A stretch of DNA of 64,000 nucleotides. Source: Tubulanus polymorphus. Taxonomy: Eukaryota > Animalia > Nemertea. Both the position numbers and the translations under genes were made by a program. Below the pieces are notes generated by a model, which made no database searches, was not told the DNA's origin, and saw only the letters and a list, made by a program, of their open reading frames with translations. This document shows positions 20,276 to 47,458 of this stretch, piece by piece. Within the stretch, counting starts at the first letter, position 1. Every line of letters begins with the position of its first letter. Location of the stretch: NCBI RefSeq assembly GCF_964204645.1, contig NC_134030.1, positions 18,064,210 through 18,128,209 of the forward strand, written 5' to 3'.

Positions 20276-23200
20276 CTATTGGAGGGATCTATATACATCT
20301 AAGCCGGTCTTAATGAATTTAGCGAAGTTGACCGTTGGGTTTTTCAGAATATCAAGGGTATTAAAGGTATTCAAATTCAAAAAGTTTTTGCGTTGTTCGT
20401 TAAGTAAGGTACAGTCAAACAGAAAATGGGATTCGTCACCTAAAGTATTACAAGTGGGGCATATTCTATCGGCTCTGTCTAAATGAAGGTTTGAGAATTT
20501 GTTCACAGGTAAAATATAGGACCCGACCCTAAATTCAAATAAACTAGTTCCTAAGTCATCACCAAGTTCTATTATATACTTCTCTAACCTAATATCATTT
20601 TTATATTGCCTAAAGTTAGTGTATATCGGATTAGTATTTATGGCAAATACAGTTTCTTGAAGGTGCTGGTCACGGAGTATCTGTTTTATTCGTTTTGAAA
20701 AAGATTTACTGTTAGTCATAAATTGCTGCGTCCAAATGCAGGACAAACCACAGTCATCAAACGTTTTCTTTATATATGATAACCAAGGGCTCTTAAATTT
20801 ATCCCTTAAAAATAAATTGAAAGATATTTTATAGAGTATTGAATTAAAATTGGTTTGCTTTCCAGATACTGTTTTCACCCAAAAGTTGATCATCCTGCGT
20901 CTAACATCTATATTCAAAGGGTAACGTCCTAGCTCTGATAAAACTTGTAAGTTGCGAGAATATTTCGTCACTTTCATTAAGATTTTACAGAAGAAGCAAT
21001 GAATATTTTCTAATAAATCAAGATTTTCATATCCCCAGATCTCACACCCATACATGGCTATTGGAGCAACACACGTATCAAATAATTTAAACATAACATC
21101 TATGGGCAATTTCAAACGTCTGCCTTTTTGAACGATCGAAAACATAGCTCTGATAGCTTTATCGTAAAGATACTTTTTTGCCTTAGCAAAGTTACCATTC
21201 CAATTGAATTTTACTCCGAGATAAACATAATCTTCCACTACCTCTAACTCTTGATCACCAAACATAAATTTCGAAATCGTTTTTATCCGGGATTTACTTC
21301 GCGCAAATACTAGTACTTTAGTTTTCTCTGAGTTAACAGTGAGACCATTAGCCGCGCAATATTATTATGAATATTATGAATAAATTCTGTAAAGTATCAA
21401 TATCCTGATCACGATTCAAATTTAGTTTTTCTATAAATGACAAAGTCGGTTTTCCACGATCAATGAAAAATTCTTCAATGTCGTTTAAGAATAACGAAAA
21501 GAGGATAGGTGAGAGATTTTCGCCTTGTCTTAAGCCTCTATCAGCTGCAAAGTATTGTGACGTGCAACCATTTAATTCAACACATGATTTTATGGAGTTA
21601 TACATATTTTTGACCACATTGAAAAAGTTTCCATTAACATTGTTAGCAATTAATTTTCGCCATAACTTTACCCTACAAATCGAGTCGAAAGCTTTCTTAA
21701 AATCAACAAAGGCGCAAAAAAGTCTTCTTCCCTGACAAAGATACAGCTCTACGATTGTTTTAAGCGTGTAAATATGATCAATGGTGGAATATTTCGATCT
21801 AAAGCCAGCCTGGGCTTCACTTATAATGTGATTCGTATCTAGAAATGTTGACAATCTTTGATTTAGGATACTTGTAAATAATTTACCAAGACAGCTAACT
21901 AAGGTAATACCTCTATAATTATCAGGATTAGAGGGATCGCCATTCTTTTTGAAAATCGGTTTGATGACGCCTATAGACCACATCTCTGGAACATATCCTG
22001 TTTTAAGAACTAAATTGAATAATTTTTGTAATATATCAACTAAAAACGGATACTGACTAACTCCCAACAGCTCATTCGTGATTCCATCAATGCCTGGGGC
22101 CTTATTGTTTTTGAGTAAAGAGATAGCCTTAATTACCTCATCACTGGTTATATCACTGTTCAAAATATAATTGTCATAGACAGGATGGTCACCCACGTCT
22201 GGGGGCTCATCACCGTCATCGGTTTCATTGTTAACATTATTCAAATCATTTAATCTCATAAAATGTTCAAGAAAAATATCAATATCTATATTAGCCTCAT
22301 TATTTTTTGTTCCGCTCGCAGAGTTTAGCATCGACCAATACTTTTTTGGGTTATTAATTTCGCATTCTCTCAATTCCTTAATAAATTCATCCTTTTGTTT
22401 CTTCTTATTTTCTCGGATGACCTTTTTATAGTTTTTAGACGAGTTCTTAAGGGATTCAAAATTGGAAGGGGTAGGGCAACCCCTATATCTTTTTTTCATA
22501 TAATTATATTTCTTCTGTGCATCTCTACAGTCCCTGCCAAACCATCTGTTGCGGACCGGTTTTTTGCAGTTATTACTTTTCCTACTTTTTCTATGGTACA
22601 TCAAATTACACTCATCAGCACTTGATAATAAAGAAGATACAAATCTATCGGTAAATCCATTAATGTCATCTGGCGATTGATTTCCTAGATCTTGCAACCC
22701 GTCCAACAGTAACTTATCTAAATCATTATCTCGTAATCTTGATTCTACATTCAGGAAAAATTGATTTGATCTAGTACTGACCCACCTAATTGAAGTTTTA
22801 AAGTTCGCGTGTTCATTACCCCTTTCATTATCGCTAGCAATGGTGTCCCTAGAATTCGTATACACGCACAGATTAATAGGATTATGTCCATCAGATAATA
22901 ATGGGTCAAAAGGCATTATTTCAAAGTCCTCAACATAACCAAACAGTTCTAAATCACACACAAAATAATCGATGACACTAGTGTTCCTAAAAGTATAATT
23001 ACCTGTCTGATCATTGCCACATCTGCCATTAAGGATAATTAGTGAATGGTTCTTACACAAATCTATTAGTTGATAGCCTGTATTATTCTTTCTTTTGTCC
23101 TGATTATTTCTAGTAGTGGGAACGCCTAAATTAATCAATGAGTCAACAATAGGGTCTAAGTTATCATCTTGAATTATCTGATTATCAGGTTCCAAAAAGT

Positions 23201-23900
23201 CTGGCATACAAGCGGTGTGAGCATTAAAGTCACCAGAAATTAACAGATTGAAATCATACTCAACTTTCAATTGCAATAACTCTATTTCAATTTCTCTGAT
23301 AGCTATTTCTGAATAATAACGACTATTTTCTGGAGGAATATAAATTACACCTAAAAGTACATGTTTGTCGCGATTAAATAAATCTTTATCTAATAAATAC
23401 CAAGATACAAACTGAGAGTCAGTCGAAATTGGAATTATTTTTTTTTTCATGAACTTCCTATATATGATACCGACGCCACCTGATCCTTTTTTTGAAGATT
23501 TTTTCCTATTTTTAAAGTGCGCCATATGGGAGGCGGGCAAGCTACAACCTAAATTACCGTCTAAATCATCTAAGTGAGTTTCAGTTAGACATGTGATGTC
23601 ATTATTGCTAATAAATTCACAGAATTCTGGGATATCGAGTTTAGCTATAAGGCCACATACATTCAGCGTAGAAAACTTTAATGATGATTTGATACAAGGA
23701 ATTTCACTTATGTTTGCTGCGTTTGCTGTACTAGTTAAATTTTGCTTATTTAAATCAGAAGTGTTAATATTTCGCTTATTTACATCAGAAATGAAATTGT
23801 TAGCAGTTACATCAGGTACATGATTGTTACTATTTACATCAGGGTATGTATCTACCGTATGAGAATTTACATGCGAGCCAACGATATCTCTATTTACATT
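20276..23900 (-). pseudogene. LINE ORF2 (apurinic endonuclease + reverse transcriptase), disrupted
   Basis: APE motifs LNVCGL, LTETHL, GDFNAH, IDYF, SDGHNP; RT motifs KAPGIDG, NYRGITL, QAGFR, FVDFKKAFDS, GLRQGENLSPILF, YLGV; C-terminal CPTC...DESHFLFDC. Frameshift and loss of YADD at ~21350-21380. 5' end approximate. Confidence 0.9.
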
Positions 23901-23980
23901 TGGATAACTGTCACATAAATTTACACTATTTACAAATTCTATAACATAACAACAACTTCGAGATACAAGGACAGTCCGGT

Positions 23981-24799
23981 CTACGAATTGTACGCAAAGT
24001 CCCTCCGCTGGTTCCTAGTGGCTGTCCATCGGTACGCGGTCACGGTTTTCGCGGTAACGAGTTTGTCCCGTACAAAGAAAGCTTGTTTTCCGTTCGCTTT
24101 CGCGGCTCTCAGCTCGGGTAGCTTTTCGCGTCGTCTCGCCGCCCATTCCTCAGGCACCTGTTCATTCAGTCCTAAAGACGAGCCCGCGAGATTTTTCGCA
24201 ACTGAACGTACCAGTTCACGATCTTTGAAGAACTCGAATTTTGCAACAATTGGGCGCGGTTTTTTCTGTTCGTTTTTCCTTCGTCCAAGGCGATGTGTTC
24301 ACGCGAATTTGAATGAGTCCACGGTCGTCTTCGGTAACTTAAGGTCTTTCTCGCAAAAGCCTTTAATTAAGTCCTCGGTATTCTCATTTTCGGATTCCTC
24401 GACGCCGTAAAAGATCAAATTATCGCGCATGCTACGCCATTGCTGATCTAGGAGTAGTTTATGGTCCGATTTGATAATTGCGTCCTGATCAGCGACGACT
24501 TTCTCTAAATCGCGAACTTTGCTTCTAAGTTGTTCGTTTTCACTCTTTAGTTGTAATACGTCCTGGTGGCAAAATTCAAGCGATTGTTTAACTTCGGTCA
24601 TGTCCCTCTGCAAGTCGTCTAGAAGCTCTAATTTCGAAAGCTGGGAAAGAATCGCATCAAGTTTTGACGATATTCCATTGTCTGCTTCCACACGTGATGC
24701 CGTTTCCTCAGTCGATTTATGATTCTGGCGATTCGGACGATTTGATGCTGCAGTCTTCTGCTTCTTGTTAGGGGGTGAAACACTTTGTCTTCCCGCCAT
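23981..24799 (-). pseudogene. LINE ORF1 (coiled coil + RRM-like), one premature stop at 24299-24301
   Basis: Coiled coil, then SMRDNLIFYGVEE; reading through the TGA gives THRLG..PRPIVAKF..FKDRE..V..LNEQVP..RRREKLP, typical ORF1p motifs. Confidence 0.85.
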
Positions 24800-25393: not shown

Positions 25394-28227
25394 TTAACTT
25401 GATTGCATAAATTCTCGATATATTCGATCTACATCTATTTTTACTCTCAGTCTTTTATTGAGTTTTTTAAGTTCTGATATGATGTTATCTCTCGTCGTAT
25501 CGGGGTCGGTGCTCCAGCAGCCGATATGCAGGTCAGAAAGATGCGGAAGATTATCGATTAATTCGACGATTGATTTGACGAATAAATCGATATCGTGCTG
25601 TGTATTAATCGGCGCTGTGCGTAAATTGCAGAACTTTAACCAGCGAATTGATGAGACGTGTTTTAGTTGTTTTAAGATGCAATTGTCCTGTTCCGGTCTA
25701 TCAAGCCCGCTATCAATACTGACTACTCGCAGCTGATTTACCGCATCTGATGATAGATACCGAACAAGTGCGTCACCATCAGCTTCTGACCGCAATACTA
25801 TTGATAATACAGTCAGCCGCGGCAGGTGAGCTAGAACGCGGTTTGATTGTAAATAAAATCCGTCAATGACAAGACGCTTTAGTTTCCGCATTAAACCGAC
25901 GCTATCACTGATTGCTACATGTTGATCTGTCGTTAGTTCGCGTAGTTCGCGCAGTTCGCGCAGTTCGCGCAGTCCGAGCAATCCGAGCAGTCCTCGCAGT
26001 CCGAGCAGTCCGCGCATTTCGTACGGTTCGAACTGAATTGATTCGATGTGTGAAGATTCTAACGCGTTGTTAAAATCTTTTAATCCCTCCGAACCGATCA
26101 AATTCTTATCGAATTTTACTCCACTAAGATGTAAGCTTTTCAAACTCGGAATGATGTTTATCAGCTCTCTCATCTTATTTCTATCGAGCTGATATCCCCG
26201 CGACCTGAGATATAGAAGTTTTAAGGATGGATACGATTTGTGAATATTGACTGAAATATTACCTAAACGTTCCGCACTAACACCAGTAACTCCAGTATCA
26301 ATAATCAGACTCTCCACTGTATTGTGTGTGTTAGTATCACCACTGATCAACTGCGCGTCAGCTCCAGATTTAATCACGTGACTTGTCTTAATCCAATCAT
26401 TATTGAGTTTCTTGTAACATTCACCAGTGTCGTTGAATTCATCTCGCCACACAAACCAGTTTATACTGTTACTCTTCTTACACATAGTCAAGCACTGATC
26501 GGGTATTGGTGACCACCTGCGTGTATCTATTATCATACCGTGAAGACTAGTGTTACTCGCTATGGCTGTTTCCAATACACGGTATTCGTCGGGTTTCAGT
26601 TCGAAAATACCTTGTATGTAAACTACCTCGATCTGACATTGTTTGTGTTCTAGTATTTTTGCGAGCGCGTTTATCCACGATCTGCTATACGCAGATACGA
26701 TCAACATTTTCTGCATGTAGGGAACTATTTCACTAATGGCGTCGTCCGGCCAGTCGGCTTCATTCAGGCATATTGACAACTGTTCAGATAAAACAGTTCT
26801 TTCGGATCTTTCGAGTTCGATGAAGCGTTCGTAATCGGGGATGAGCGCCATCTCCCTAGTAACCGTACCCAAGAAATGGGACTTCACTATTGTGACTGCT
26901 TTTAAATGTTCATCTATTAAAGTCTTGGAAAGTTCACCGAGGCCGCGGTTATACTTGAAACGATACAGCAGCCCTGCCATGAATCTCGGGTATAATTCAC
27001 CATATTTCACAAGTTCGTCCTGTAGTTGATCAAACGCGCATTTATTCCAGGGTATTTCACCACTGTTGTTGAATTGCACGACCGAGTGTACCGCCGCCAG
27101 AAATTCGTGCACAGATTTGTGTATGAACCGTAGCTGGACGGAGCGGTCTGATTTCCGTCGCGGCGACACCTCTTTGCACGTCAAAGCCGTCCTCTTCGAT
27201 TCGTCGAGTTTGAGATGATTTTCGCTGAAGCTGTTTTGATGCTCGATGAGCGTCTTATATGCGACTTGACAAATTTCTTTAAGCGCTTCAGAATTTTCGA
27301 TGTCCCCAAAAAAACATTCCTTCGACAAGTCGAGGCCCTCGCGTTTACTGATCAGAAAACATGTCAAATCGATGTAGATATCGGTGAGTTTTGATGGTAT
27401 CGTAATTTCTTCCTCGTCCATAAACAGACAAAAAAACATATGTAGTATCAGCGGGTTGTAGTAGATACTTTCAAATATAGGTGGCACTGCGTCTTTAAGC
27501 TTGCGGAATAGCAAATATGGATTGCGCTCGGGGAATTTTCTCTTCATAATATCGATGACTTCTTCTTGTTCGAAGCCGGATATCGATACAACGGTGAATT
27601 TGGGATCAGTGACGATCTTGCTGCCCCCGGACTCACGTGTTGTTATGACGATATGCGCTTTCGGTAATTTATTGGTCACGTGTACGATATATTCCTTCGC
27701 TTTATCGTTTTTCAACTCGTCGAAGCCGTCTAGAAAAAATAACGCTTTTTCTGCATTTTCCCGTAAGAATTCTTTAAAACCATCAATCGGCAGAACCTTT
27801 CTGATTTCTGGATTCAAAAGATTTTCGTAAATGTACGTATAAATACACGCGTTATCAGCGGGCAGTTCATTTAACGGTATATAGAATAACATAGGAAACT
27901 CCGTTGTTGATGTTGTCCAGGTTAACACTTGATTAACAATCTGAGTAGTTTTACCCATACCGGGTTCACCCACGAGGCACACGGGTTTCATAGCACGCTT
28001 GTCATGAGTGAAAAGCTTCTTGAAATCATCAGGTAAAATCACTGGCGGCTCCTCACTTTCTTTATTTTCCTTCGGGTTTCGTTTTTGGGCTCGAATTTTC
28101 GCGTGTTCTTGGGTGAAGAAGTCGTTGAAATTGGTGACGTCATCGCTCCACCAAACCTCTTTGTAATTTTCAACATCGATCATTCGTTTATACGTTTCTT
28201 TCAGGCTCTTCTGAACTTGAGTAACAT
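25394..28227 (-). CDS. NLR-like immune receptor, main exon (NACHT NTPase + C-terminal LRR-like region)
   Basis: Walker A GEPGMGKTT, Walker B LFFLDGFDE, sensor-1 IVITTR, NPLIL, winged-helix FIHKSVHEFLAA; repeated LxxLxL motifs C-terminally. The track's TTG start lies in an intron; acceptor TTCATTTTTACAG|ATGTTAC at 28228/28227, phase 1. Confidence 0.9.
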
Positions 28228-29312
28228 CTGTAAAAATGAATTCAGTTTTAGAATTTTTCAATTGATTTAAGAAATTACGTTAAAATTGAATGATGAAAAA
28301 AAACCTGTCTGATCACATCACAACACATCGCAACAGAAAATACCAAGCAATTAGGAAGCTACAGGTCTCGGAATTTAGACCAAAAATATGTACAAAAAGG
28401 TCTCAGGACGGCCATCGTGAGACCGATCGACCCAATTTTAACTTTTTCTTATGCTGATGTGCGCTGTGGAGATATATACTTATAAAAGATAAAGGATATT
28501 GATTAAAGCCATTCCAATATTTGATGAATTTTCATTATAAGTAATTTGTTTATAATTAAGATTGAAATTATGTTATTTTCGTTTTTCAATTCTCATGTTA
28601 ATCAAATCATTGTAACCTTTAGAAAGTATCAAATCATCATTTCTTTCTTTAAAGGGAGTTTCAAGAATATTCATTATTTTTTCATCAATTACCTTCATAA
28701 TCCTAAACTGTATTGAATATTTTAGGATTTTTGGTGCCATTATGGAAAGTATCTATTAGTTCAGTAATTAAATATGTTTCATTTAATAGTATTTGATTAA
28801 TTACAGTAATATTATCTATATTATTTTGTCTTCCATTAACTAAATTTGTTGCTGAGATATATTTTTTAATGTTTAAAAGTGAAAATAATTCATTGGTTTC
28901 ATTTATTTCAATTTTATATTCAGTTTCTTATTCTTCTTTCTTCATCTATAACAAAACTTTTATTAAAAAAATTTTTTTAGATATTTTATATTTAAAGATA
29001 TAACTTATACAAATGTAAACATTCTATGTTATAAATCTATATTATTTTACTAACACTTTACTCACACTTATTCATATAAAAAAATTTGAGTAATTCACTG
29101 TTTTTTTTAGTGAAGGAATATAATTTTATAGTAAAAACATAGTAAATCTAAATTATTTTGCTAGCACTTTACTCACTCTTATCTATATATGAGGTCTTTA
29201 AGGTATTTAGGAGCCGCACCATGGATACACTTGAATACTTGTATAATGTTTTTAGTTAATAAATTTAACAACTAAAAACATAATATATCTATACCATATA
29301 TGAAATTATTAG

Positions 29313-29489
29313 AGTAATAGGGTTTTAGTTGTTTCATATCAGAGGTTGAAAGTTCGACGAAAGGTTCGGGATTTAAAAAATATGAGAATATAACTAATTG
29401 ATAATTAGTAATATTTTCATATTTTTAAAATTTTCGACCTTTCGTCGACCTTTCGACCTCTGATATGAAACAACTAAAACCCTATTACT
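29313..29489. repeat. 177-bp imperfect foldback palindrome
   Basis: AGTAATAGGGTTTTAGTTGTTTCATATCAGAGGT ... ACCTCTGATATGAAACAACTAAAACCCTATTACT, centre ~29401. Confidence 0.9.
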
Positions 29490-29542
29490 AATAAAGCATT
29501 AAACTCGAAGAAAGTTTATGGGCAAAATGTTTGGAAAAAGGC

Positions 29543-30488
29543 AAGATGCACGTAATTAGAATGGAACAGAGGCAAATTTGAAAGGCGTGCAATAATGTGG
29601 CGCTAATTAATTTTCGCGACTGAAAAATGAACAGTCGAGCAATTCATGCCTGAAATGTGGCTACAGAAACTGATCGTATGTTTACTAGATTTTGAGTAGG
29701 TGTCAGTCAAAAGTTCTCTAAATAGCATAAATATGTGTGAACTGGCTGCCTGTCAGCCATCTTGATTGTGAACAGGGACAATCCGAAATAACTGGATTCC
29801 AGGCGGTTGGACGGACAGACGAAAAGTGAACGTAATAGCCAGCTGGGCAAAAAAAAACAATCATACGCCACCTGGTGGATAGAATGTCTTGAAATAATTT
29901 TCCATCATTTTAGTTAAAGATTTGGAAATGGTTATTTTGCTAATGTGGCATTATTTGAGTAAACGCTATTTTGCCAATGGCTATTTATAATAAGATATAG
30001 TAATAAAATATAACGATAACATCATTATATTGGTTTTAGGGTCAGGGTTTCGATAGGGTTGGGGTCTAGAGGGTTAGGGTGAGGTTTAGGGTCCGTTTTT
30101 ACCCCTAGGGATAGGGTTAGGGTAAGGAAGGTGAGTCTATATCCAGTGAAAAATTACGGGTGGTTTTGAGTGAGCCCGGTGGTCTACTGGAAAGACGTTA
30201 GACTAGCAATCTGCTGGCCCGGATTCGAATCCCGCTCTATGTTGCTATTATCTTTAACTCTGTTCTCCACACTTTCCTTGAATTTTCTAAATCACGCACC
30301 TCTGTGCGCATGCGCGGCATCAATTAGCCAATCAGAACGCGCCATTGGCAAAATAGCGTTAACAGGAATAATGTCGCATTGGCAAAATATCCACAAAATA
30401 TATTAAAGTACATTAAAATAAACTTGCCAATGCAAAATAGAGCAATGTTTCAAATTCGCCTATGTTCCATCCTAATTACATACATCTT
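29543..30488. mobile_element. Nested non-autonomous inverted-repeat elements (outer ~40-bp IRs; inner IRs ~29933-29981/30341-30389 enclosing GGGTTA-like repeats and a tRNA-like segment)
   Basis: AAGATGCACGTAATTAGAATGGAACAGAGGCAAATTTGAAA versus its imperfect reverse complement at 30448-30488; CGCTATTTTGCCAATGGC / GCCATTGGCAAAATAGCG; A-box TGGTCTACTGG and B-box GATTCGAATCC at ~30179-30232. Confidence 0.55.
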
Positions 30489-30571
30489 TAGAGACATGGT
30501 CAAAGACTTCGGACCAGTCTTATGATTTAGGATTCAAGACTCAAGCACGACGAGTTAAAATCTATAATTAC

Positions 30572-30698
30572 CGAGATTCTCAGCAGGTCTGTCGATAGTT
30601 TGTTTATCTCCAAGGTAAACAACATTCATCGTATTATTGTCACCGATTTGAACCATTTTCGATTTATCTACATTTATTCCTGTATAACTCTGTGCCAT
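30572..30698 (-). CDS. NLR upstream coding exon C with canonical RHIM motif
   Basis: Acceptor CTGTTTTTCAG| (exon starts 30709), ATG at 30698, MAQSYTGINVDKSKMVQIGDNNTMNVVYLGDKQTIDRPAENL, phase-1 donor G|GTAATT matching the phase-1 acceptor of the NACHT exon. Confidence 0.75.
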
Positions 30699-31254
30699 AG
30701 TACCACAAACTGAAAAACAGGTTTAGAATTCAGTCATTTCATCTCAACAAGTGCAGCACATTTTTCCTGACCTAATTGTTTTGTTCAGTATTTACACAAT
30801 CAGCCTCTACTCATATTCAGACTGAAGTTTTCTTTGTTTCCGCTACTGATAAAGGATAATGGAATGTAGGAAAAAAATGGCCAGGAAAAAAAGGCCAAGG
30901 AAAATTAATGAGAACTACTGACAATGTTAATTAAGCTTTCAATTTAATCTCCATCACAAGTTCGCATTTTGAACGTTAGAATAATTTACTAATGTTCATC
31001 CGCGACTGAGATGGCCTCGATCTCCCGAGAGATTTCCGACGACGTTACAAAACACAGTTGAAATTGTTTATTAGGTTTTTATCGAGTGAAAAATGCATTC
31101 AGATAACGCGCCGGGGTCATCGACTGAGATATCAAATCACACGCCACAACAGGTCGCCATCCGCAAATGACTGACTTTCATTAGATGTTGCAACAACAAG
31201 ACATTAATTTATCTTCTAAAAATGCCTGAATACTGTCTTAATTTGCTGGATTAG

Positions 31255-31372
31255 TTTAAAGCCGGGCGTAGGTCGGCCTTGCGACGCGACGCGATCGTCG
31301 CGGGCGGTCGCAGTGAGTAGCGTCGCAGTGAGTCGCAAGCCGTCGCAAGGCCGACCTACGCCCGGCTTTAAA
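31255..31372. mobile_element. MITE with perfect 32-bp inverted termini
   Basis: TTTAAAGCCGGGCGTAGGTCGGCCTTGCGACG at 31255-31286 and its exact reverse complement at 31341-31372. Confidence 0.8.
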
Positions 31373-32347
31373 GAGGCGCACACTCGACAATCTGACATCG
31401 AAATGTAACCTGCATCGGTTTCTTTCAAGGATTTTATGTTGAGAAGCGAACAAGTGTAACATGTAAAACTTTCATTGATTAGACTAATGACATTTTAATA
31501 CCTGCGCTACACTTTATCTAGACTTTCTGACGAATTCACATGATGATGAATGTTTAATATAATTAGTGATAATAGGTTTTGAAGATAAAATGATAAGAAT
31601 TTAGTATATTAGAGCAGTTCAAAAGTCGAAATTTAGACACATCAGAAACAGCAATAAAGAAGCAGAAACACAGAAATCTTCTTGTGGTTAGTTTGTCGTA
31701 TAGCCATTTTACGTAGAAAAAAAACTGTGTCAGCAAAAGACAGACTTATGTTAGATATTGCAACGAGAAGACTTGTATCTAAAAATGCCTGAATACTTTC
31801 TTAATTTGCTGGACCAGCGACCAGCAATCGGGAGCTCATCTATAGACCAGTGGAATATCGCGAATTCGCGCTCGCGCATACATGGAACTAGCCAGCGATT
31901 TTTCCTTCGAGCTTTTTGAGCATTGAAATGAAACTGTTTTCCTCCCACAACCAAACCGAGGAAATTGTGAAGACAAAAAAGAATTCAAACGATATTTTCT
32001 CTAAAACGAGAACATATCACGTGGCACTTTGGATGCGTATTCTAAAATCGTACACATCGATGTAAGGGTAGGACTATTAGGTTTTAGGAGAGAAAGTCTT
32101 ATGTCTGAACTCAACTAACGCATGCTTAAAGATCGCGCTCATTTATCAAAAAATAATTTTCCATCGCTTGACGTAGCGGGGAATATTGCAACGTTTCTGC
32201 TACAATCGCCTATAGTCGACAGTACTGTAACGCGCTATTCTATATGATATTTGCCCTGTTTTGGACCTAAATCTACTCTACTGCCTTTATGTATTGTTAA
32301 ATCTTTGAAGTCTAGATTAATGTTCCCCTCGTTGTCTACTTTCGATG

Positions 32348-32417
32348 AGTAATTGGAAAAGTGGGCTTTCAGATCAGAGGGCGAGAGGGCAAGACACCAC
32401 TCATCACCACAAGTAAT
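32348..32417 (+). repeat. Polinton left TIR
   Basis: AGTAATTGGAAAAGTGGGCTTTCAGATCAGAGGGCGAGAGGGCAAGACACCACTCATCACCACAAGTAAT; reverse complement at 49145-49214. Confidence 0.95.
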
Positions 32418-32432
32418 TTTTTTCCCTAATAA

Positions 32433-35400
32433 ACGGGGGAGAATGAATACCAGCCAGAAAACAATAATGTTAATAAAAATCAATATTATTGCACATATTG
32501 TAAAAAATACGTCGATACATCTCATAAAACACGACATGAAAAAACTGCAAATCATATAAAAAATGTAATAGATTTTGAAACTCCAGAAAATTCCAATGAA
32601 AGAAAAGAAAGATTAGAAAATATGAATGTGGATGAAATAAAATGTGAAGTTTGTAATGAATTTATAGTAAAAAGGAATTATAATAGACATCTCGAATCAC
32701 AAAAACACAAACAAAATTTAAGTAATAATGTTTTAGGAAAAGATTATTTCGATGATTAACCTCAAAAAGTAATAAAACCAACTTCAAAAACTAAATCCAT
32801 TTCAAATAAACCTTACATGGAAAATGTTAGAAATTATATTGATTCACTAGAAATAAAAGATACAATTGAAATTTTAGAAACATTACATAGTAAAATTGGT
32901 CCTGCAGCTATTATATTTAGATTTTTTAAAGGTACAACAATAGGAGATTATAGTAAATTTAATGAAATAATAGAAAAAATACTAGATTTTATAACAGATG
33001 TTGAATATCCAAAAATTAGTATCTCTGGGAAAGTAAGTTTTATAAAGTCAGAAGAAAAAATTAATTATAATATTCAAACACACTCTGAAGAAATAATTTC
33101 AAAAACACAAATAAAAGAAAAGTTAGAAAAAATATTTAATGAATTTAAACGTCATATTGAAGAAAGATATTTTGAGGGTTCTGGCTTAACATTGAATGAA
33201 ATTATATATTTAGATTTAAATGTTTATAATACAAAAAGAAATAAAACATCAAAAAGTAATAAAATGTTTAAAAATGATTCAAACTTTACAACAGAAAAGG
33301 ATATTAAAGCATTATCTTATATTAAATTACCATTTACAACAAAAGCAGTAATAAATATTCAAAATGAAGATAATAAATGTTTTCTATGGTCAATTATTAG
33401 TTGCTTACATCCAACACAGGAAAATGTTTGTAGAATAACAGATTATCGGAAATATGAAACATTACATAAAATTGATCAATATCCAGTAACTATAAAAATG
33501 ATTTCTAAAATAGAAAAAGTTAATAATTTAAAAATAAATGTATTCGAATTAATGCAATTACCAAAGACAAAAGGTGAAAATATTAAAGATTATACATTGG
33601 AAGCTTTATATTTAACAGAATATTATGATGATGAAAATGCTATAGATTTGTTATATTACAAAGAAGATGAAAATGAACATTATATGTGGTTAAAACAAAT
33701 TGATTTATTCTTTAGAACAGAAAGTGATCATCATCATAAAAGTTATCTATATAGAAAATGTTTATCTAAATTTATGACTGAGAATACATTATTAAAACAT
33801 AAAGAATTATGTGATAATAAAGATTTTTGTAAATTAATAATGCCAACAGAAAAAGATTATAAATTGAAATTTACTAATCATAAATTTAAGAATATTGTTC
33901 CATTTGTAATTTATGGGGATTTTGAATCGTTGAATAAAGAATTAACTGATCAAGATAGAAAAGAAATATATAACAAAAAGCAATTATTAAAATCAATGGA
34001 TAAAGGAAATGAATTAAATGAAGACACAATACAAGACCCACCAATTATAAATACAATTAAAAAAGTTCATCAAAGAGCTGCTGCTTATGGAATTTATATA
34101 AAATCAAAATATCCTGAATTATATGAAAGTCAATATATTTCTTTTAGAGGTGAAGATGTAGTTAATGATTTTTGTAACAAAATGATTGAATTAGGAAGTG
34201 ATTTTGCAAAATTATTAAACAAAAATAAAAGAATAGTTATGACAAAAGAAGATGAAATTGATTTTAATTATGCAACTCATTGATGTTATTGTGAAAAACG
34301 TTTTTATTCATTTGATAAAAAAGTTAGAGATCATGCTCATTTAAATTCAAAATATCGTGGAGCTGCTCATGAAGATTGCAATTTACAAGCTAAGAAAGTT
34401 AATTTCGTACCAATATTATTTCATAATTTATCAGGCTATGATACCCATCTATTTATAAAACAATTATCGGGAAAATTGGGCGCAATTAATCAAGAAATAG
34501 AAGAATATAATGCTATGAATGGTGTAAATGTAAGAAAATATGATTTTAAACTATTAGCTAAAACATCTGAAAATTATATTTCATTTCAATTTGGTTGCAT
34601 TAGATTTTTAGATTCTTATAGATTTCTAGCAAGTTCATTAGATAATTTATCAAAAAGTTTAGTTGATAATGATTTTGTTATAACTCGATATTATTATCCA
34701 AATGACCAAGATTTTAAATTATTGAGATACAAAGGTGCAATTCCTTATTCATTTTATAAAACACACAATGATTTTAATGTAACAGAATTATAAAAAGATC
34801 AATTTTATGATCAATTAAAAGAGGAGTATGTGAAAGACGAAGTGTTTAATAGAACATTAAATATTTGGAACCATTTTAAGATGAAAAATCATGGTGAATT
34901 AGTTGATTTATATTTAAAATCAGATGTTATGATATTGGCTGACATATTTGAAAAATTTAGAGAAGTTAATTTGAATCATTTTAATGTTGATCCTTGTTAT
35001 TGCTACTCTAGTCCTGGTTTTACCTGGCAATGTGGTTTAAAATATACAAATGTAGAATTAGATTTATTAAAAGAACCAGATATGGTTTTATTATTTGAAA
35101 AATCAATTAGAGGTGGAATTAGTGGTGTTATGGGAGATAGGTATTTTAAAGCAAATGATGAATATAAATTATTATATATTGACGCCAATAATTTATATGG
35201 TTGGGCAATGATGCAACCTCAACCATATAAAAATTTTATATTAACAGAAGTTGAAAATGATGATAAAACTAATTGGGAAAGCGCAATTATGTGTTTAGAA
35301 GATGAAGCAGCAATTGGTTATTTCTTTGTAGTTGATTTAGAATATCCTGAAAATATAAAGTTTAAAACAAGAAACTTACCTTATTGCCCAGAACATTTAA

Positions 35401-37583
35401 CCGTAGATGATAGTTATTTAAGTGAATACCAGAAGAAAATAAAACCGAAAGATCATGTTTTTACAGAAAAATTAATACTTACTCTAAATAATAAATACAA
35501 TTATATTGTTCATTATAGAATGTTAAGATTTTATCTAAAACAAGGAATGAAATTAAAGAAAGTACATAGATATATTGAATTTAATCAATCGAAGTGGTTA
35601 GAAAAATATATAGATTTCAATACTCAACAGAGAACCATATCAAAAACAGATTTTGAAAAAGATTTCTTCAAATTAATGAATAATAGTTTTTATGGTAAAA
35701 CATGTGAAAATATTAGAAATAGAAATGATATTGAATTAGTAAATAATTCTGAAAGATTAAGACATTTACAATCAAGTCCTAGACATTTAGGAAATAAAAG
35801 ATTTGAAGATTATTTAACAGCAGTTAAATTAAAAAGAACGTCAATGAAATTTAATAAACCTATATTCATTGGTTCAACTGTTTTAGAAGTATCAAAATTA
35901 TTAATGTATGATTTTTATTATAATGTTTTACAACCACTTTTTGGGGAAAAGCATATTGAAATATTATGTTTTGATTCTGTAACAGCTGACACCCCAATAT
36001 TGTTAAAATGTAATGATAAAATATTGATAAGAAGAATTTCATAAATAATTCAAAAACAAAATGAATGTTATATTTCATATGGTGAAAAAGAATTAATACA
36101 AATAAATGGATTAATGGATGGTTGGACAAGAAATGGATGGAAAAAATTAAAGAATATTATCTGACATAAAACAAATAAGAAAATCTATAGAGTTAGAACT
36201 AAATTAGGGTTTGTAGATGTTACAGAAAATCATAGTTTAATTAAACGAAATGGCGAAGAAATAAAACCAACTGATATAAAAATTGGAGATGAATTATAAC
36301 ATAAAAGATTTTTCCAAAGAATGAATCATATGTCATTTGATGAAATAATTGACAATATTTATAACATAGAACCCGAAACTTTTGAAGAAAAAGAATATTT
36401 TATCAAAGGATTTTTCATGGGAGATGGTTCAGCAGGTGTGTATAATTATGTTTGGGGTAATAAATATTGCTGGTATTTATGCAATCAAGACTTAAAATTA
36501 TAAGAAAGAATTAAGAAATTCTGTGAAGAAGTTTATTCACATAAAACATTCAAAATCATAGATGTTATGAAATCATCAGCAGTTTATAGAATACTTGTAA
36601 ATAATCCTAAAGATTTTGCTATAAAATATAATTATGAATTCATGCAATAGTGAAAAGTAATACTTCAACAAAAGAAAAGATAGTACCAGATTATGTATTA
36701 AATGCAAAAAAATAATTTAAGAAAGTGGTTCTTCATTGGATTCTATGCCGCAGATGGCACTAAAAAAATTACAAAGGATAAAAAGATAACATTTGCACAG
36801 AAAGGAAAAGTTGCTATATCAGGATTAAATATATTAAGCAGTTCATTAGGATTTAATATGAATATAGAATTAAATAAATCTAAACCAAATTGTTTTAATT
36901 TAAGGCATGTAGAAAAAGAATTAACAGAAGAAGTTAAAGATTTATTTGAAATATATAACCCATCAGATTATGTTTATGATTTATCAACTGAAGATGGAAC
37001 ATTCAATTCTGGGTTCCCATTAATCCAAAAAAATACTGACAGTTACATACTAAAAATCAAGACAAATGACATAAAAAAAGACTTAAAAACATTAAAACAT
37101 CATTTTGATTATCCCAAAGATCATGCACTATTTAGCAATGATAATAAAAAGATTCCTGGTAAATTTAAAGATGAATTAGGGGGTGATGAAATGATTGAAT
37201 TTGTTGGGATAAGAAGTAAAATGTATAGTTATAGAACAAAAGATCATGAAGCTAAAAAGTTAAAAGGAATAACAAAACATGTGGTTGATAAACATATAGA
37301 ATTTCAAGATTGTAATTCAATTGTAATGAAACATAAAATGAATTGTTTAAGATCAGAAGATCACGAGATGTACATTAATGAAGTTGAAAAAACTAGTTTG
37401 AATCCATTTGATGATAAAAGGCATATTTTAGATGATGGTATAAAAACATTACCTTATGGTTATCAAAACATACAATCAATATCATCATACTCGAATTCAC
37501 TATTGGCTTCTTCATTTTTATTTAATTGTTCTTGTATAATTTGTTTAGGTTCTTCTTCCATTTCATTTATCTCATTTAAATAA
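32433..37583 (+). pseudogene. pPolB: Protein-primed family B DNA polymerase with N-terminal C2H2 fingers, vOTU-like protease region, EndoVII insertion and intein; multiple premature stops
   Basis: ORFs 32817, 34476, 34830, 36321 and 36702 share one frame. Motifs NEDNKCFLW..HY, YGDFES (ExoI), VRDHAHL..YRGAAHEDCNL (EndoVII), FHNLSGYD (ExoII), FLDSYRF, YLKSDV (ExoIII), SIRGG, YIDANNLYG, KLMNNSFYGK, D/TDS, GKFKDE, RSKMY, KLKGI. Inferred start is a mutated ACG at 32433. Confidence 0.93.
35976..37034 (+). mobile_element. Intein with LAGLIDADG homing endonuclease in pPolB motif C (decayed)
   Basis: ILCFD|SVTADTPILL (block A); VDVTENHSL (block B TxxH); GFFMGDGS and GFYAADG (LAGLIDADG helices); YVYDLSTEDGTF (block F); IQKN|TDS (block G, +1 Thr). 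Removing it restores D-TDS. Confidence 0.92.
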
Positions 37584-38800
37584 AGTTCTTTCTTGTTCCA
37601 CATTTCATCTCGCTCTCTTTGTTTCTTTTTGTTTGTTAATTCGTCAAATGGAATTATAATATCGATGTTTAAATAATTTACAATCTTATTTAAAAAGAAT
37701 TCATAATTAATTGAATCTGTTATTCTATTTTCCAAATAATACATTAATATTTGTTTAAATATTTTTTTTATATTTTCCATATCTTCTTCTGTTAATTTAG
37801 GTTTTTCATAATAATCGTTAAATAATAAATATAAATACATTTTCTTTTGTTTTTGTTAAATGTTGACGGAATAATTGTTTTTATAATATCTTTTTTAGTT
37901 ATTTCACCATTTTTATTTTCTATTATTTTCATTTTTTCAAGCCATTGCATATATTCTGGTGTATGATCTTCTATAGAAAATATTTTAAAAATTTCATCTA
38001 GATAATTTAATTTTGGTTCTATGAGAAAATTTCTAGTTTTTTCTTCACCCCATGAATTCTTTTGCCATCCACAATCCACAATCAACACAAAATAACACAG
38101 TACCTTCTTGTCTTAAGGTCGCGTAATTACATTGTGGACATTTTCGTTTATAATTTATTGGTAATAGATCTTCATTAAGCTCTTGGTATTTTCTTACATT
38201 TTCTTTATGTTTTATTGTTCTATTATGTAGATTTGAATTACTTGTTGTAATAATCAATTTACAATATTTACAATAATATGTTTTTCTTGTTAATTCATTA
38301 TATTGTTTTTCTAACTTTTCAACTGTTTCTTTATTATCTGGTAACGTTTTCTCATATTTTATTTTTTCTAATAAATTATTTTTTCTTTCATTGAATTCAG
38401 TTTCAAATTTATTAGAAATATTATCTATATGTACTTTACGAAATTGATGATTCTCCCAATCTTCTATATTTTCAGGGCTATATTTTATTCGACAAGGCTC
38501 ACAGAAATGATCTTTTATATTATCCTTATCATAGAATAAGAAAGGTCTTTTCCAAATAATTTCAGGTTCAACTTCAACAGAATTACTATTACTTTCGTTA
38601 CTATCAACATTAGCCGTTGCGCCATTAATTTTACACTTCTCTGAATGTTTTTTAACATAATTTCTTGAGAATAATTTATTACATTTTGGACAGTTTAGTT
38701 TAGGGGGTTTATAATTTTCATCATGTTTTTTCATATGTCGAGCCATATTACTTTTTCTTAGAAGTTCACCACAAATTTCACATGCTATCTTCTCATCCAT
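37463..38800 (-). pseudogene. Polinton multi-C2H2 zinc-finger protein, split by frameshifts into ORFs 38045-38800, 37792-38088 and 37463-37840
   Basis: CEICG..RHMKKH, CPKC..KH..KC, CEPC..H...H, CKYC..H....H, CPQC..CVDC. A CCACAAT duplication at ~38069-38082 coincides with a frame change. Confidence 0.75.
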
Positions 38801-38858
38801 TTATTAGGGAAAAAAATTGCCTGTGGTGATGAGTGGTAATTTTTTTATGTTATAAATA
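38801..38858. promoter_or_regulatory. Putative bidirectional Polinton promoter containing the TIR-shared CCACTCATCACCAC motif
   Basis: The motif also occurs at ~32397-32417, 48851-48871 and 49145-49165. T-run/TAAATG-type starts face both directions. Confidence 0.6.
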
Positions 38859-39960
38859 ATGGTAGAATTAAAAGAATACAGAATATTTGTTGATTCTAGA
38901 AGACTTACAAATTATAAATCTCATAATTTACTAGTACAATTAGATAGAGAATTTAAGAATTGTGTAGATTTAAAATTAGTTAATATAAGTGTATGTAACT
39001 CATTTTACAATAAATCGGATAAAAGTTTTGAACATAGAGGGTTTATGATTTATATGAGAAATAAAGATAAATGGTTTCATATATTTTTAAAACCAGGATT
39101 ATATAATTTAGAATCATTAGCGCAGGAAATTAATAGAAGAGCTCGGTTGAAAATCGGGGGCATTTCTGTATTTGAAATTAAATTTAATAAAATTGATAGT
39201 ACTAATAAAATAAGAATAAAGATATCTAATGAACAACATAAATTTATGGTAAACAAACCACTGGCTAAAATGTTAGGAATTAAACCGCTTACAGTTACTG
39301 GAAACGCAGAAGGCAGCTCAAATATAATACCTTTTACACACTTTTATATTTTTTTTTGATCATAGATTGTTTATGATTCATGATAAAAATATGGATAAAT
39401 GGTATCATCTATTTCTAAGACCAGGATTATATAATTTAGAAACATTATCTCAAGAAATTAATAGAAGAGCTCGGTTAAAAGTGGGTGAATCTGTTGGGTT
39501 TAACATTAAATTTAATAAAATTGATAGTACTAATGAAATAAGAATAAAGTTAACTAATGAACAATATAAATTCATAGTAAGAAAACCATTAGCTTAAATG
39601 CTAGGAGTTAATCCAAATAAAGTTTATTCAAATGTTGATACTACGCCAAATATAATACCTTTTACGCACTTCTATATTTATTGTAATTTAATTGATCCTA
39701 CAAAAACATTCGAAGCAACTAAAGATACAATTTGTAATTCTGGTTTATTAAATATTTTACCATTAAAAAATGTCAAACAATTTGGAACTCAAATAAATTA
39801 TAATTTAACTGAATGTGATTTCAAACCTTGTATTCCACATTTCAATAATTTTGAATTAGAAATAAGAAATCATAATGGTTATTTAATTGATTTGAATAAC
39901 TTTCCTGTAATTTATGAATTAGTTATAAGATGTAGAGTAATTTTTTCACTATATAAATGA
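38859..39960 (+). pseudogene. Minor capsid protein (penton-like) with duplicated internal module
   Basis: N-terminal IFVDSR...L...NSFYN and C-terminal YIYCNLI...LLNILP...FELEIRNHNGYLIDLNN fit Polinton/PLV single-jelly-roll penton patterns; frameshift at ~39359 and stop at 39595-39597. Confidence 0.65.
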
Positions 39961-40316
39961 ATATAACTGTTGGACCGAGTATATGTTTTGGATTTGATTT
40001 TAAAGGTGAGAAAGAAATGAAATTTAACATTAATGATGTAATTACACATATCAAAAATATTGCATTTTCTAATGAAACAACATTTGAGTATGAAAAAACA
40101 ATAGATAAAGAAACTTTAAATGTAGAAAAGATAACTAATTTAATTAGAGAATCTTTAAGATTTTATGAATTAGATGAAGATTTTATAATCGATGATATTA
40201 AAAACATATTAACGGAAATATATGATAATCATAAAAGTAGTAATGAAATAAATGTTGAATTAATCATCACTAAGATAACTAAATATTTTGAAGATAGTAA
40301 TTTTTTTGATAAATGA
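39957..40316 (+). CDS. Polinton hypothetical protein (acidic)
   Basis: Intact ORF preceded by TAATTTTTT..TAAATG. Confidence 0.6.
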   Translation: MNITVGPSICFGFDFKGEKEMKFNINDVITHIKNIAFSNETTFEYEKTIDKETLNVEKITNLIRESLRFYELDEDFIIDDIKNILTEIYDNHKSSNEINVELIITKITKYFEDSNFFDK

Positions 40317-40538
40317 ATGAGTGATAATAAGTGGATAATAACTGGATTATATAATGGAGCATTACTATCAGTTGGAACTGTTGGTTATTCAATGGTATTA
40401 AAAAAGGTCTTCAAAATGGGAAGTGTTAATGTTGATAGATTTGATATAAATGATATCTTAAAATTAACATTAGCAGTTACTTCATCTAATTTAACTATTG
40501 ATTATTTAGAAAAACAAAAATATATTCCTCCCATATAA
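40317..40538 (+). CDS. Polinton small hydrophobic protein
   Basis: Intact 73-aa ORF with the shared upstream motif and two hydrophobic segments. Confidence 0.6.
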   Translation: MSDNKWIITGLYNGALLSVGTVGYSMVLKKVFKMGSVNVDRFDINDILKLTLAVTSSNLTIDYLEKQKYIPPI

Positions 40539-40562
40539 ATACATAATTTTTTTGCTAAATAA

Positions 40563-40985
40563 ATGGCTTCTGCAATTATAACTACTATAGGATCGGCAAT
40601 TGTTAACGCTTTAGCATTTACTGGTGGTGGTTATTTATTTAAACATATTGATAAAAATAGTTCATTAGGAGAACAAAGAAGACATAACTTAGCATTAGAG
40701 AAATATAATAAAGCAGCAGAAGAATACAGAGAAAAACGACAAAACTATATGGATTATATTAACAAGGAATTATATGATCAGAAGATTTCACATAGAGATT
40801 TTCAATCAGTTGATGATGCAATGAGTTTATATAACGCAGTAACCAATAAAGAAAAATTACATCTATACAAACCTAAATTATCAGATTATTATACCCCAAG
40901 TAAAGAACAACAGAAATATGAAATAATTTGGATTTTAGGTGGAACAGTTATTGTTATATTTGTAGCATATAAATTTACTAATTAG
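40563..40985 (+). CDS. Polinton protein with N-terminal amphipathic/Gly segment, coiled coil and C-terminal TM
   Basis: MASAIITTIGSAIVNALAFTGGGYLF...EQRRHNLALEK...IIWILGGTVIVIFVAY; shared upstream motif. Confidence 0.65.
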   Translation: MASAIITTIGSAIVNALAFTGGGYLFKHIDKNSSLGEQRRHNLALEKYNKAAEEYREKRQNYMDYINKELYDQKISHRDFQSVDDAMSLYNAVTNKEKLHLYKPKLSDYYTPSKEQQKYEIIWILGGTVIVIFVAYKFTN

Positions 40986-41004
40986 TAATTTTTTTTCTAA
41001 ATAA

Positions 41005-41439
41005 ATGGAAGATAAAGTTGATAGTATTGATATTATTCCTCATGATATAAATAAAACTAAATTAAAAATATATTTAGAAAAACAAATATTAGAATTTGAA
41101 GGTGACTTAAAGATAAAAAAGAAAAAATATTTAAAAAGTAAAATTATATATTATCTTATTATTAGTGGTTCGGTTACAATTAGTTCTGTAATAACATTTC
41201 TAGCAATATTCAGTCCATTAACACCTTTAGCTATATCAATCGGTGTATTAGGATTAAGTTCAAGTGTTTTAACTGGTATAAGTTCAAAATTAAATATAAA
41301 AAGTAATAAAGAAAAAATTAAAACTAATATAAAAGAAATTAATAAATTGAAGAATACACTAGATCATATAATAAGTTTAAATGGTCATATAACAGTTGAA
41401 GAACAAGATAAATTATTAAAAGAATTAATAAATTATTAA
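41005..41439 (+). CDS. Polinton two-TM protein with flanking coiled coils
   Basis: Two hydrophobic helices at aa ~48-94; shared upstream motif. Confidence 0.65.
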   Translation: MEDKVDSIDIIPHDINKTKLKIYLEKQILEFEGDLKIKKKKYLKSKIIYYLIISGSVTISSVITFLAIFSPLTPLAISIGVLGLSSSVLTGISSKLNIKSNKEKIKTNIKEINKLKNTLDHIISLNGHITVEEQDKLLKELINY

Positions 41440-41455
41440 TTTTTCAATTAAATAA

Positions 41456-42867
41456 ATGGTAGATGGTTTTCCAAAAGCTTTCCAATATAATAAATAAATT
41501 AAATATAATATTCCAGCAATAGATTTTAATAAAGATATTACATATAGAAATGAAGTTTTAGATTCATTAACTAATTTAGAAATTTATGTTACTGAAACTA
41601 ATAATTTTAGTGCAAAGATGGAAAATATATTTCATGTATATTTAATTAATTTAAAAAAATTGAAAGATGAAAAACAATGGTTATTAAAATCTAATATGAA
41701 GTATTGGCAGAACCAATTAAATTTTGCTGTTTATTGTGCAACAACAGGATGTGGAATTAGTTGGAATGATCATTTGAATAATTCTAAATATGAATTAATT
41801 CAAAGTTTATTTAGATTTCATACATACTTTCAAATCAGAATAATATTAAATGAATTAGAGTGCGCTTTACCAGGATCTAGGTATTTTAAAGAATTAGATA
41901 ATAATATTAATTTATCAAAGTTTTTTAAAATTTGTAATGAATTTAATATAGATATAAATAATTCTGATTTTAGAACAAAAATTGGAACAATAAGATCACT
42001 TCCTTGCCCTAAAAAGATTGCAGAATATTGTGCACTTCCCATACCATCTAATAGTTTGTATAATATCTATAGTAATAAATTAGGTTATGGTAAAATAGAA
42101 ACTAAGGATTTAGAAACATTAAATTTCAATAAATTACCGACATTTTATGATAATTTAAAACAAGAAAACAATAATGGTTGGGTTTATTTCATTTTAGAAA
42201 ATAATGAAGGTTTTACAAAATCAGGTATACAAAGAATAAATCAATCTATTAGAACTTATTTGATATGTATTTTAGGTGCGCAAGTTGAAACAAGATCCCC
42301 AATAATTGGAAATTTAAATACATCATTTGATACACAGAAACAATTCAAAGTATTATTTGAAGATTCTATTCATAATGATAAAAATAGATCGATTCCAGAA
42401 AACATTGTGAGATATCAAAATTATTTAGATAAATCACATATTAGACTAAATTATTGTATAGGCCCTAATCTATTTATTATTTCTAACGATTTAGTATTAA
42501 AGATGGGAAACATAATTGGTTATAATAATCTAATTAAAACTGCAACAATAAATAATTCATTTGGATTAAATGATATAAATAAAAAGATTATTACTGCTCC
42601 AAAATTAATGGAAGGTGAAAAAATAAAAAACACATTCAATCAACAGAAACTAAAACTAAAAATATTAAATTGCATAATGATTCTAAAATAAAAGATTACA
42701 ATACATCAGAAAATATAAAAACTGATAATATTCAACATGATATAATTAAAACTGATAATGATAATAAATTCCATGAAAATACTAAATTAGCTTTAACTTG
42801 TACAGGAATTGTTATAGGAGGAATATTATATTTTAAATTTTATTTTTTATTATATAAATGGATGTAG
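41456..42867 (+). pseudogene. Polinton hypothetical protein (WQNQLNFAVYCATTGCG) with C-terminal TM; early stop and late frameshift
   Basis: TAAATG start at 41456 is in frame with ORF 41618; continues in ORF 42670..42867. Confidence 0.6.
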
Positions 42868-44289: not shown

Positions 44290-44309
44290 TTAATTTTTTT
44301 GTTAAATAA

Positions 44310-45561: not shown

Positions 45562-45591
45562 AAATATAAAGTTAAAATTAAGGATATATAA

Positions 45592-47145: not shown

Positions 47146-47155
47146 ATTTATTTAA

Positions 47156-47427
47156 ATTCAACTAGCTTGTTAATCTAGTTGAATTCTAGTTACATTCTAG
47201 TTGAATTCTAGTTATTGGTAGTTGGAACAAAATCAACTAGATTTAACAATATTTTAACTAGCTTGTTAATCTAGTTTAATTCTAGTTACATTCTAGTTGA
47301 ATTCTAGTTGTTAGTAGTTGAAACAAAAATCAACTAGATTTAACAAGAAATAAACAAAAACAACAATATTTCAACTAGCTTGTTAATCTAGTTGAATTCT
47401 AGTTACATTCTAGTTGAATTCTAGTTG
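47156..47427. repeat. Three CTAG-rich direct repeats
   Basis: AACTAGCTTGTTAATCTAGTTGAATTCTAGTTACATTCTAGTTGAATTCTAGTT at ~47160, ~47256 and ~47373. Confidence 0.85.
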
Positions 47428-47458
47428 CAACAACACAACTAATTTATTTGTTATACAA

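Follow-up and report, generated by a model that had tools for sequence, protein, structure and literature searches.

Amyloid templating by NLR proteins has been established experimentally in fungi and predicted in bacteria, and for animals the record consists of a single bioinformatic note on amphioxus. In that work (Kajava et al. 2014, PMC4262963), the amyloid motif RHIM was found to replace CARD-like domains in amphioxus immune proteins, including a RHIM-NACHT-repeat protein that was likened to NWD2, and other invertebrates were reported to hold subsets (PMC4262963). In later reviews, amyloid signalling linked to NLRs continues to be presented as a fungal and prokaryotic phenomenon. The core of the RHIM has been defined as the tetrad (V/I)-Q-(V/I/L/C)-G (PMC9444067), and the PP motif of fungal NLR systems is considered homologous to it. 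A survey published in 2023 (PMC9835746) included two nemerteans, Lineus ruber through its transcriptome and Notospermus geniculatus through its genome, and detected no RHIM in either. Here we describe an NLR gene of the nemertean Tubulanus polymorphus in which a small exon encoding a RHIM, designated exon C, lies upstream of a large exon encoding a NACHT domain and leucine-rich repeats (LRRs).

The gene is located on the reverse strand of a 64-kb stretch of genomic DNA, referred to as the window, and all positions are window coordinates unless a contig (C1, C3, C56 and so on) or an extracted locus (L followed by three digits) is named. A preliminary description of this DNA had proposed an NLR whose only N-terminal effector is an amyloid motif, and had pointed out that RHIM-NACHT combinations are known in invertebrates, as the published amphioxus case (PMC4262963) bears out. 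The reading that we favour, and judge to be rather probable, is that the gene encodes a canonical-RHIM member of an expanded NLR family, in which exon C is spliced directly to the NACHT-LRR exon and the RHIM nucleates an amyloid.

Results

Exon structure of the NLR gene

The 3' portion of the gene is a large coding exon (25394-28227 (-)), which ends with the stop codon TAA at 25394-25396, is open for 943 codons, and comprises a pre-NACHT linker, the NACHT NTPase, helical domains and the LRR region. The open reading frame (ORF) called mechanically in this region (25394-28261 (-), 955 aa) begins with TTG, and a strong acceptor, tcatttttacag/AT (tttttacag at 28228-28230; slashes mark exon boundaries), sits 34 nt inside it. 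Coding therefore begins at 28227 and not at the TTG, and in the RefSeq models of paralogues, too, this residue is the first of the NACHT exon. Exon C (30572-30709 (-)) is 138 nt in length and of phase 1-1, with an in-frame ATG at 30698, the acceptor cctgtttttcag ending in ttcag, and the donor CTCG/gtaatt. As its last G and the AT at 28227-28226 together form an Asp codon, the phases of the two exons fit. The intron between them (28228-30571 (-), approximately 2.3 kb) has gt...ag ends and matches the same intron of the paralogues in pieces (82-90%). No additional coding exon was found in it in a tblastn search of the window with the N-termini of the paralogues. The preliminary description had taken the ORF start to be intronic and had placed a phase-compatible exon at 30572-30709; both proposals agree with the splice sites read from the sequence, and the coordinates are exact. 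The splice pattern from RHIM exon to NACHT exon is supported by the RefSeq annotation of the paralogues, from which we infer the splicing at this locus.

The NACHT domain (27530-27985 (-)) was recognized by Pfam PF05729 with 63 bits (E 3.8e-17), and the Walker A (GEPGMGKT, 27947-27970 (-)) and Walker B (FFLDGFDE, 27716-27739 (-)) motifs are intact. When the NACHT exon was searched in NCBIfam and among PDB sequences, nothing useful emerged and no solved NLR was matched at the sequence level, and the Pfam LRR models all remained under cut-off on this exon (LRR_14, just 17 bits). The last 424 residues were modelled with AlphaFold2 from an alignment of 14 paralogues, giving a solenoid of alternating strands and helices (predicted local distance difference test (pLDDT) 77, predicted template modelling score (pTM) 0.76). 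The top Foldseek matches of this C-terminus were NLRC4, NLRP3/9/14, ribonuclease inhibitor and F-box LRR proteins, with E-values down to 3e-8. The C-terminus (25397-26668 (-)) is thus confirmed in the predicted model, at the level of fold, as an LRR solenoid of the RNase-inhibitor type, and the NACHT-LRR assignment made earlier stands, the LRR part by fold. An in-frame microsatellite of 9-nt units encoding a GLR/ELR run (Gly/Glu-Leu-Arg) is present in the LRR region (25935-26021 (-); Tandem Repeats Finder, period 9, 9.7 copies). Its length varies between the paralogue proteins, and 116 nt are skipped here in one DNA contig.

Exon C encodes a RHIM

The 42-aa peptide of exon C contains INVDKSKMVQIGDNNTMNV. 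It scored 22.6 bits (E 7.5e-5) on the Pfam RHIM model PF12721 over residues 9-25, against a curated gathering cut-off of 20 bits for a model of only 22 positions. The matched stretch (INV...VQIGDNNTMNV) corresponds to 30624-30674 (-), and a scan of the whole genome with the same model agreed on the place. Direct reading identifies the tetrad VQIG, in accordance with the published definition, flanked by IN upstream and by N..M.V downstream. On the basis of the model score that the preliminary description had proposed as a check, together with the tetrad and its flanks, the identification of the exon C motif as a genuine RHIM is confirmed at the sequence level.

In the six-frame PF12721 scan of the 268-Mb assembly, exon C scored 22.3 bits with a genome-wide E-value of 0.05, and just five places rose above the RHIM cut-off. 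These were exon C, its near-identical twin 486 kb away, an exon of a paralogue on C56, and two non-NLR genes. Three of the five are exons located shortly upstream of NACHT exons, which argues that the match is not due to chance. An alignment of exon C with TICAM-like RHIMs (alignment A3) displayed invariant Q, G and N residues along with the upstream IN. The profile made from A3 consists of 12 rows, 4 from nemertean RHIMs and 8 from RHIMs of relatives of the TIR protein on C3 described below, and so represents mostly sequences other than NLR cassettes. Against 177,635 PDB sequences, it retrieved RHIM chains only, namely RIPK3 fibrils (7DAC/7DA4), RIPK1 (8IB0/9M6M), a herpesvirus RHIM and TRIF. 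A profile built from the NLR cassettes alone (A4) gave no match among the PDB sequences, nor did a phmmer search of them with the 42-aa peptide.

A family of NLR genes with cassette exons

The closest public relatives of the NACHT exon are 13 RefSeq proteins from Tubulanus polymorphus itself, a palaeonemertean, with 57-78% identity. The genome harbours approximately 25 paralogous NACHT exons, several of them with stops, and at least 24 RHIM-like exon matches, at least 13 of which share the strand of a NACHT paralogue and precede it by 0.3-5.8 kb. The N-termini of the RefSeq proteins consist of one to several cassette units, ending in PAENL/DV.QV.K.L.ETY, which corresponds to the junction put forward in the preliminary description. 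When the RefSeq models were mapped back to the genome, at least six loci (P0002/L032, P0003/L033, P0004/L034, P0005/L030, P0007/L029 and P0013/L035) gave 100% matches, first to the predicted cassettes and next to the NACHT exon. Among these, P0007 is the model of the C56 locus, and joins the C56 RHIM exon, the closest relative of exon C, to the NACHT exon. The two RHIM exons are 86% identical; they are the same over SKMVQIGDNNTMN and differ in the flanks. The RefSeq isoforms include or skip cassettes, and presumably, judging from Gnomon practice, rest on transcript data.

All cassettes follow one design, ttcag/T followed by 10 nt and ATG, then ending in G/gtaat, with a length divisible by three (96 or 132-156 nt), so that any number of them can be included without a change of frame. 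Of 20 distinct cassettes from the loci that were extracted, a Q-h-G core was found in 3, a degenerate core (for example LSIIGDNN or MRKSGDNN) in 8 and no core (for example …NAENVRDDEEQ…) in a further 8, with 1 left unclassed. In every case, the canonical cassette is located next to the NACHT exon. The gene under study is thus one member of an NLR family expanded in the T. polymorphus lineage, which carries the RHIM on small symmetric cassettes of phase 1-1. Exon C is the most canonical RHIM of the family, in a gene interrupted by a Polinton.

Other members of the family displayed features of their own. Before another NACHT paralogue on C9, there is a tandem repeat with a 63-nt unit (L035:1410-2034 (+) = C9:3605409-3606033; 9.9 copies, 93% matches) that encodes 21-aa units (…GINAENAEIVQIGDK). 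In two RefSeq models, P0006 and P0012, which may represent either true fusions or merged genes, the front of an immunoglobulin-like (Ig-like) transmembrane receptor is joined to a NACHT-LRR of this family. Exons 73-87% identical to their Ig-like ectodomain, transmembrane and Cys-rich cytoplasmic parts are present at 431-2165 (+), followed by no NACHT on the plus strand within the window. On C1 (C1:19744861-19749144; L027/L037), three identical degenerate cassettes reside in a 2079-bp tandem repeat with transposon-like ORFs downstream, and have the look of a satellite-like relic. These three RHIM-like exons were rejected as a partner, considering the degenerate core, the transposon context and the absence of a nearby NACHT.

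Upstream cassettes, a Polinton-like element and the 5' end

The tblastn search with paralogue N-termini revealed two further cassettes on the same strand, approximately 20 kb upstream, with 88-96% identity. Exon B (50863-50958 (-), 96 nt, phase 1-1) is core-less and its splice sites are identical to those of exon C. Exon A (51064-51249 (-), 186 nt, phase 1-1) has a degenerate, RHIM-like IQLG core, NIQLGVNSTLTI, and gave no match to Pfam RHIM. The 3' part of exon A has been replaced by sequence resembling an untranslated region (UTR), with loss of the canonical PAENLG/gtaatt end, and the putative donor, as read from the sequence, is GTGAGT, which keeps phase 1.

The intron between cassettes B and C contains an AT-rich Polinton/adintovirus-like element of 16.9 kb (32348-49214), bounded by 70-nt terminal inverted repeats (32348-32417 and 49145-49214, 97% complementary) and containing a rve/chromo integrase ORF (45592-46719). 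The sequences on its two sides (49215-50862 and 30710-32347) are collinear with single cassette-to-cassette introns of the paralogues (approximately 0.8 kb in L034). As the two flanks are contiguous in the paralogue introns, the three cassettes and the NACHT exon belonged to a single gene, into an intron of which the element was inserted. Exon C is therefore probably not the sole coding exon at the N-terminus, which may hold up to three cassettes. As for the earlier claim of a motif that is the only N-terminal effector, one half holds, as the locus has no folded N-terminal domain and no death-fold (CARD, PYD or DD) or TIR exon is present there; the other half probably does not, given cassettes A and B upstream.

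Further upstream, a UTR-like piece (61020-61074 (-), donor AAT/gtgtgt) corresponds both to the UTR-like part of exon A and to sequence that precedes the C56 cassettes, and may represent a 5' non-coding exon. It was preferred to a donor at 51423/51422, which was rejected as the end of a 5' UTR exon, there being no support for it in the paralogues. Directly upstream of the UTR-like piece is a minisatellite with a 20-nt unit (agctagtgaactgtctgay; 61075-61300 (-)). At the other end of the gene, directly downstream of the stop codon, there is a retrotransposon of the long interspersed nuclear element (LINE) type (20276-24799 (-)) with RVT_1 and endonuclease ORFs, to which the coiled-coil, ORF1-like ORF at 24299-24799 belongs.

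A near-identical second copy

At least 40 kb of the window is found again, with 99.3-99.7% identity, 486 kb away (C6:17598000-17634000; L028, L001, L040 and L041). This second copy contains the NLR together with its three cassettes and the Polinton, and lacks window positions 52474-59088. Either a segmental duplication took place recently, or the copy is a haplotig that was placed in tandem. The presence of the Polinton in the duplicate locus indicates that its insertion predates the duplication. The RHIM exon is identical in the two copies and the 943-codon ORF is open in both. Three of the 2834 bases of the NACHT exon differ (F423Y, T553K and one silent), and in 4053 bases of flanking sequence, 20 columns of the alignment differ when gaps are counted. 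The 6.6 kb missing from the duplicate (52474-59088) is probably a mobile insertion and contains an 841-aa ORF (54475-57000 (-)) with DUF1280.

Candidate RHIM partners in the genome

Within the window itself, there is no second RHIM, and the neighbours of the NLR are the LINE, the Polinton and the DUF1280 ORF. Elsewhere in the genome, a RHIM of 21.7 bits (C3:26755815-26755892) is in a 422-aa ORF (L025:7417-8685 (-) = C3:26755416-26756684). Word searches of public proteins with the whole ORF and with its N-terminal region gave no match. A full HMMER search with the N-terminal domain brought 62 relatives, and TIR_2 was matched in 16 of 34 aligned sequences (the C3 query and 33 relatives). The domain was predicted to fold as TIR (pLDDT 85), with TRAM, MyD88 and TRIF as the best structural matches. 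VQIGDxN is present downstream in 8 of the relatives, the named ones being from Lingula, Lottia, Mya and Mactra. Judged from the motif and the predicted fold, the C3 ORF is a TIR-RHIM adaptor resembling TICAM/TRIF. Downstream of it, an acidic 11-aa unit (TERKTVDKNDE) is repeated, and its TIR-RHIM relatives are found in a brachiopod, a gastropod and bivalves. A complex prediction for the exon C peptide and the RHIM segment of the adaptor gave a score of 0.03, a value with no bearing either way.

Two further candidates scored lower. An exon on C7 (L039:5637-5867 (-) = C7:3977636-3977866) encodes a hydrophobic span followed directly by NVQIGNNNFATV, a RHIM-like motif at C7:3977726-3977791 that scored 16 bits and thus under the cut-off, and is a candidate for a membrane receptor with a juxtamembrane RHIM. 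On C8, an ORF ends with VQLGNGNTMEVSIA, then a stop codon and AATAAA (C8:4552367-4552447; RHIM, 19.4 bits). It lies within a run of ORFs on the same strand without Pfam matches (L026:6309-9868 (-) = C8:4550308-4553867), and for the ORF upstream of it (L026:9143-9868 (-)), the Atlas search gave no usable match and Pfam none. The RHIM-bearing ORF could encode an effector-side protein with a C-terminal RHIM. MLKL_N (PF22215) and PF17111 had no match in the genome in a six-frame search made exon by exon, which is weak evidence of absence. The partner search envisaged in the preliminary description thus turned up RHIM proteins, in the form of the TIR-RHIM adaptor, the transmembrane RHIM exon and the C-terminal-RHIM ORF, but none of the RIPK or MLKL type.

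Discussion

The reading that we favour suggests the following mechanism, which we infer from two analogues, fungal NWD2/HET-S and RIPK1/RIPK3. Sensing of a ligand by the LRRs would lead to oligomerization of the NACHT domain, which would crowd the N-terminal RHIMs into a cross-beta nucleus. This nucleus could then template the RHIM of a partner, for which the TIR-RHIM (TICAM/TRIF-like) adaptor is the best candidate in the genome. A bolder version, which we put forward tentatively as a possibility, regards the cassette NLRs as the functional equivalent, in an animal, of the relay of fungi and bacteria in which an NLR nucleates amyloid and the amyloid converts a partner. The NACHT-proximal RHIM would act as a template for either the TIR-RHIM adaptor or the C8 protein, and alternative splicing of core-less or degenerate cassettes would adjust the threshold for nucleation or the choice of partner, amounting to a splice-tunable amyloid switch.

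A number of observations weigh against the favoured reading, and some of them are the substance of other explanations. Partners resembling RIPK, MLKL or HeLo were not found in the genome, with the same weak force as evidence of absence in an exon-wise six-frame search. The word search of public proteins returned no protein with the NACHT exon of this locus, which raises the possibility that the locus is unannotated or silent. Nothing of the locus is contained in the possible RNA run (n=1), and the three runs that do contain it are DNA; the contigs correspond to paralogue variants only, for example one with a core-less cassette in place of 30603-30666. The 16.9-kb Polinton and the changed donor of exon A may also have crippled the 5' end. 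These latter points also speak for the explanation that this copy is a decaying or silent duplicate of a real family, its NACHT-LRR exon separated from the promoter by the Polinton and the altered exon A, and the LINE directly downstream, the lost canonical end of exon A and the stops in several paralogues can be counted in the same direction. We nevertheless consider this explanation unlikely. Neither copy shows damage to the 943-codon ORF, to the RHIM exon or to any splice site, the NACHT exon has diverged by 3 of 2834 bases compared with 20 columns in 4053 flanking bases, an intron of 20 kb is ordinary in animal genes, and exon C has an in-frame ATG of its own.

Another group of observations concerns the motif. 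Most paralogue cassettes have a degenerate or missing core and fail the RHIM model, which only the exon C type passes, and the canonical cassette itself is skipped in some RefSeq isoforms. With Q-h-G kept in just 3 of the 20 distinct cassettes, and with a cassette-only profile that retrieves no solved RHIM, the motif might be derived from a RHIM and no longer nucleate amyloid, the cassettes serving as a disordered, alternatively spliced linker or as a linear docking peptide. This seems quite improbable to us, considering that the full tetrad and both flanking strands are kept here, that SKMVQIGDNNTMN is the same as in the C56 exon while the flanks differ, that the canonical cassette is fixed next to NACHT, and that other RHIM proteins are available in the genome to pair with. 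As to the idea that a motif of little length and low information content, in some small ORF of no relation, resembles a RHIM by chance, the brevity of the RHIM model and the empty phmmer search of PDB sequences could be cited in its favour. We give it hardly any credence, as the genome-wide scan and the RefSeq paralogue models refute it for practical purposes: the E-value across the genome is 0.05, three of the five places above the cut-off occupy the same exon position in NLR paralogues, the splice sites are conserved, and RefSeq models use these exons.

A canonical RHIM on a spiralian NLR provides a concrete and testable animal case of NLR amyloid templating, with annotated paralogues, modular exons and RHIM candidates in the same genome. 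Considering that no RHIM was found in the two nemerteans surveyed (PMC9835746), the Tubulanus RHIMs are new for the phylum, and the published impression of RHIM-less nemerteans (PMC9835746) is corrected. The RHIM-TIR adaptors, for their part, are spread across Lophotrochozoa.

The gene can be compared with several known systems. Mammalian RIPK1, RIPK3, TRIF and ZBP1 share the tetrad (V/I)-Q-(V/I/L/C)-G with flanking IxN and N (PMC9444067), whereas the carrier here is an NLR, without an attached kinase, Z-alpha or death domain. Vertebrate NLRC4 and NLRP proteins likewise combine NACHT with LRRs of the RNase-inhibitor type, and the Tubulanus gene differs from them in having no CARD, PYD or BIR. 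In the bacterial and archaeal BASS3-NLR systems (Dyrka et al. 2020), a motif related to RHIM and PP is also N-terminal to an NLR-type NTPase, but there the NLR and a neighbouring effector form a two-gene prokaryotic operon, in contrast to the spliced animal gene described here. The fungal NWD2/HET-S and PNT1/HELLP (PP motif) systems likewise have a NACHT protein that begins with a short amyloid motif; in the Tubulanus gene, the core would occupy residues 9-25 if translation starts at the ATG of exon C. The fungal pairs are adjacent genes in which the effector has the same motif C-terminal to a HeLo or HeLo-like pore domain, whereas the Tubulanus gene has no effector next to it and the genome gave no HeLo/MLKL_N match (the latter being weak evidence of absence). 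The C-terminal repeats are WD, TPR or ANK in the fungal NLRs and LRR in the gene studied here. The RHIM-NACHT-repeat proteins of Branchiostoma floridae (e.g. BF82280, PMC4262963) are sequence predictions in which the RHIM also stands where a CARD-like six-helix domain is usual. As the RHIM-NACHT layout is already published for amphioxus, the Tubulanus gene is an interesting variant and not a new kind. Compared with BF82280 by its description, it differs in coming from Nemertea and in carrying the RHIM on duplicated phase 1-1 cassettes of three kinds, which are included or skipped by RefSeq isoforms.

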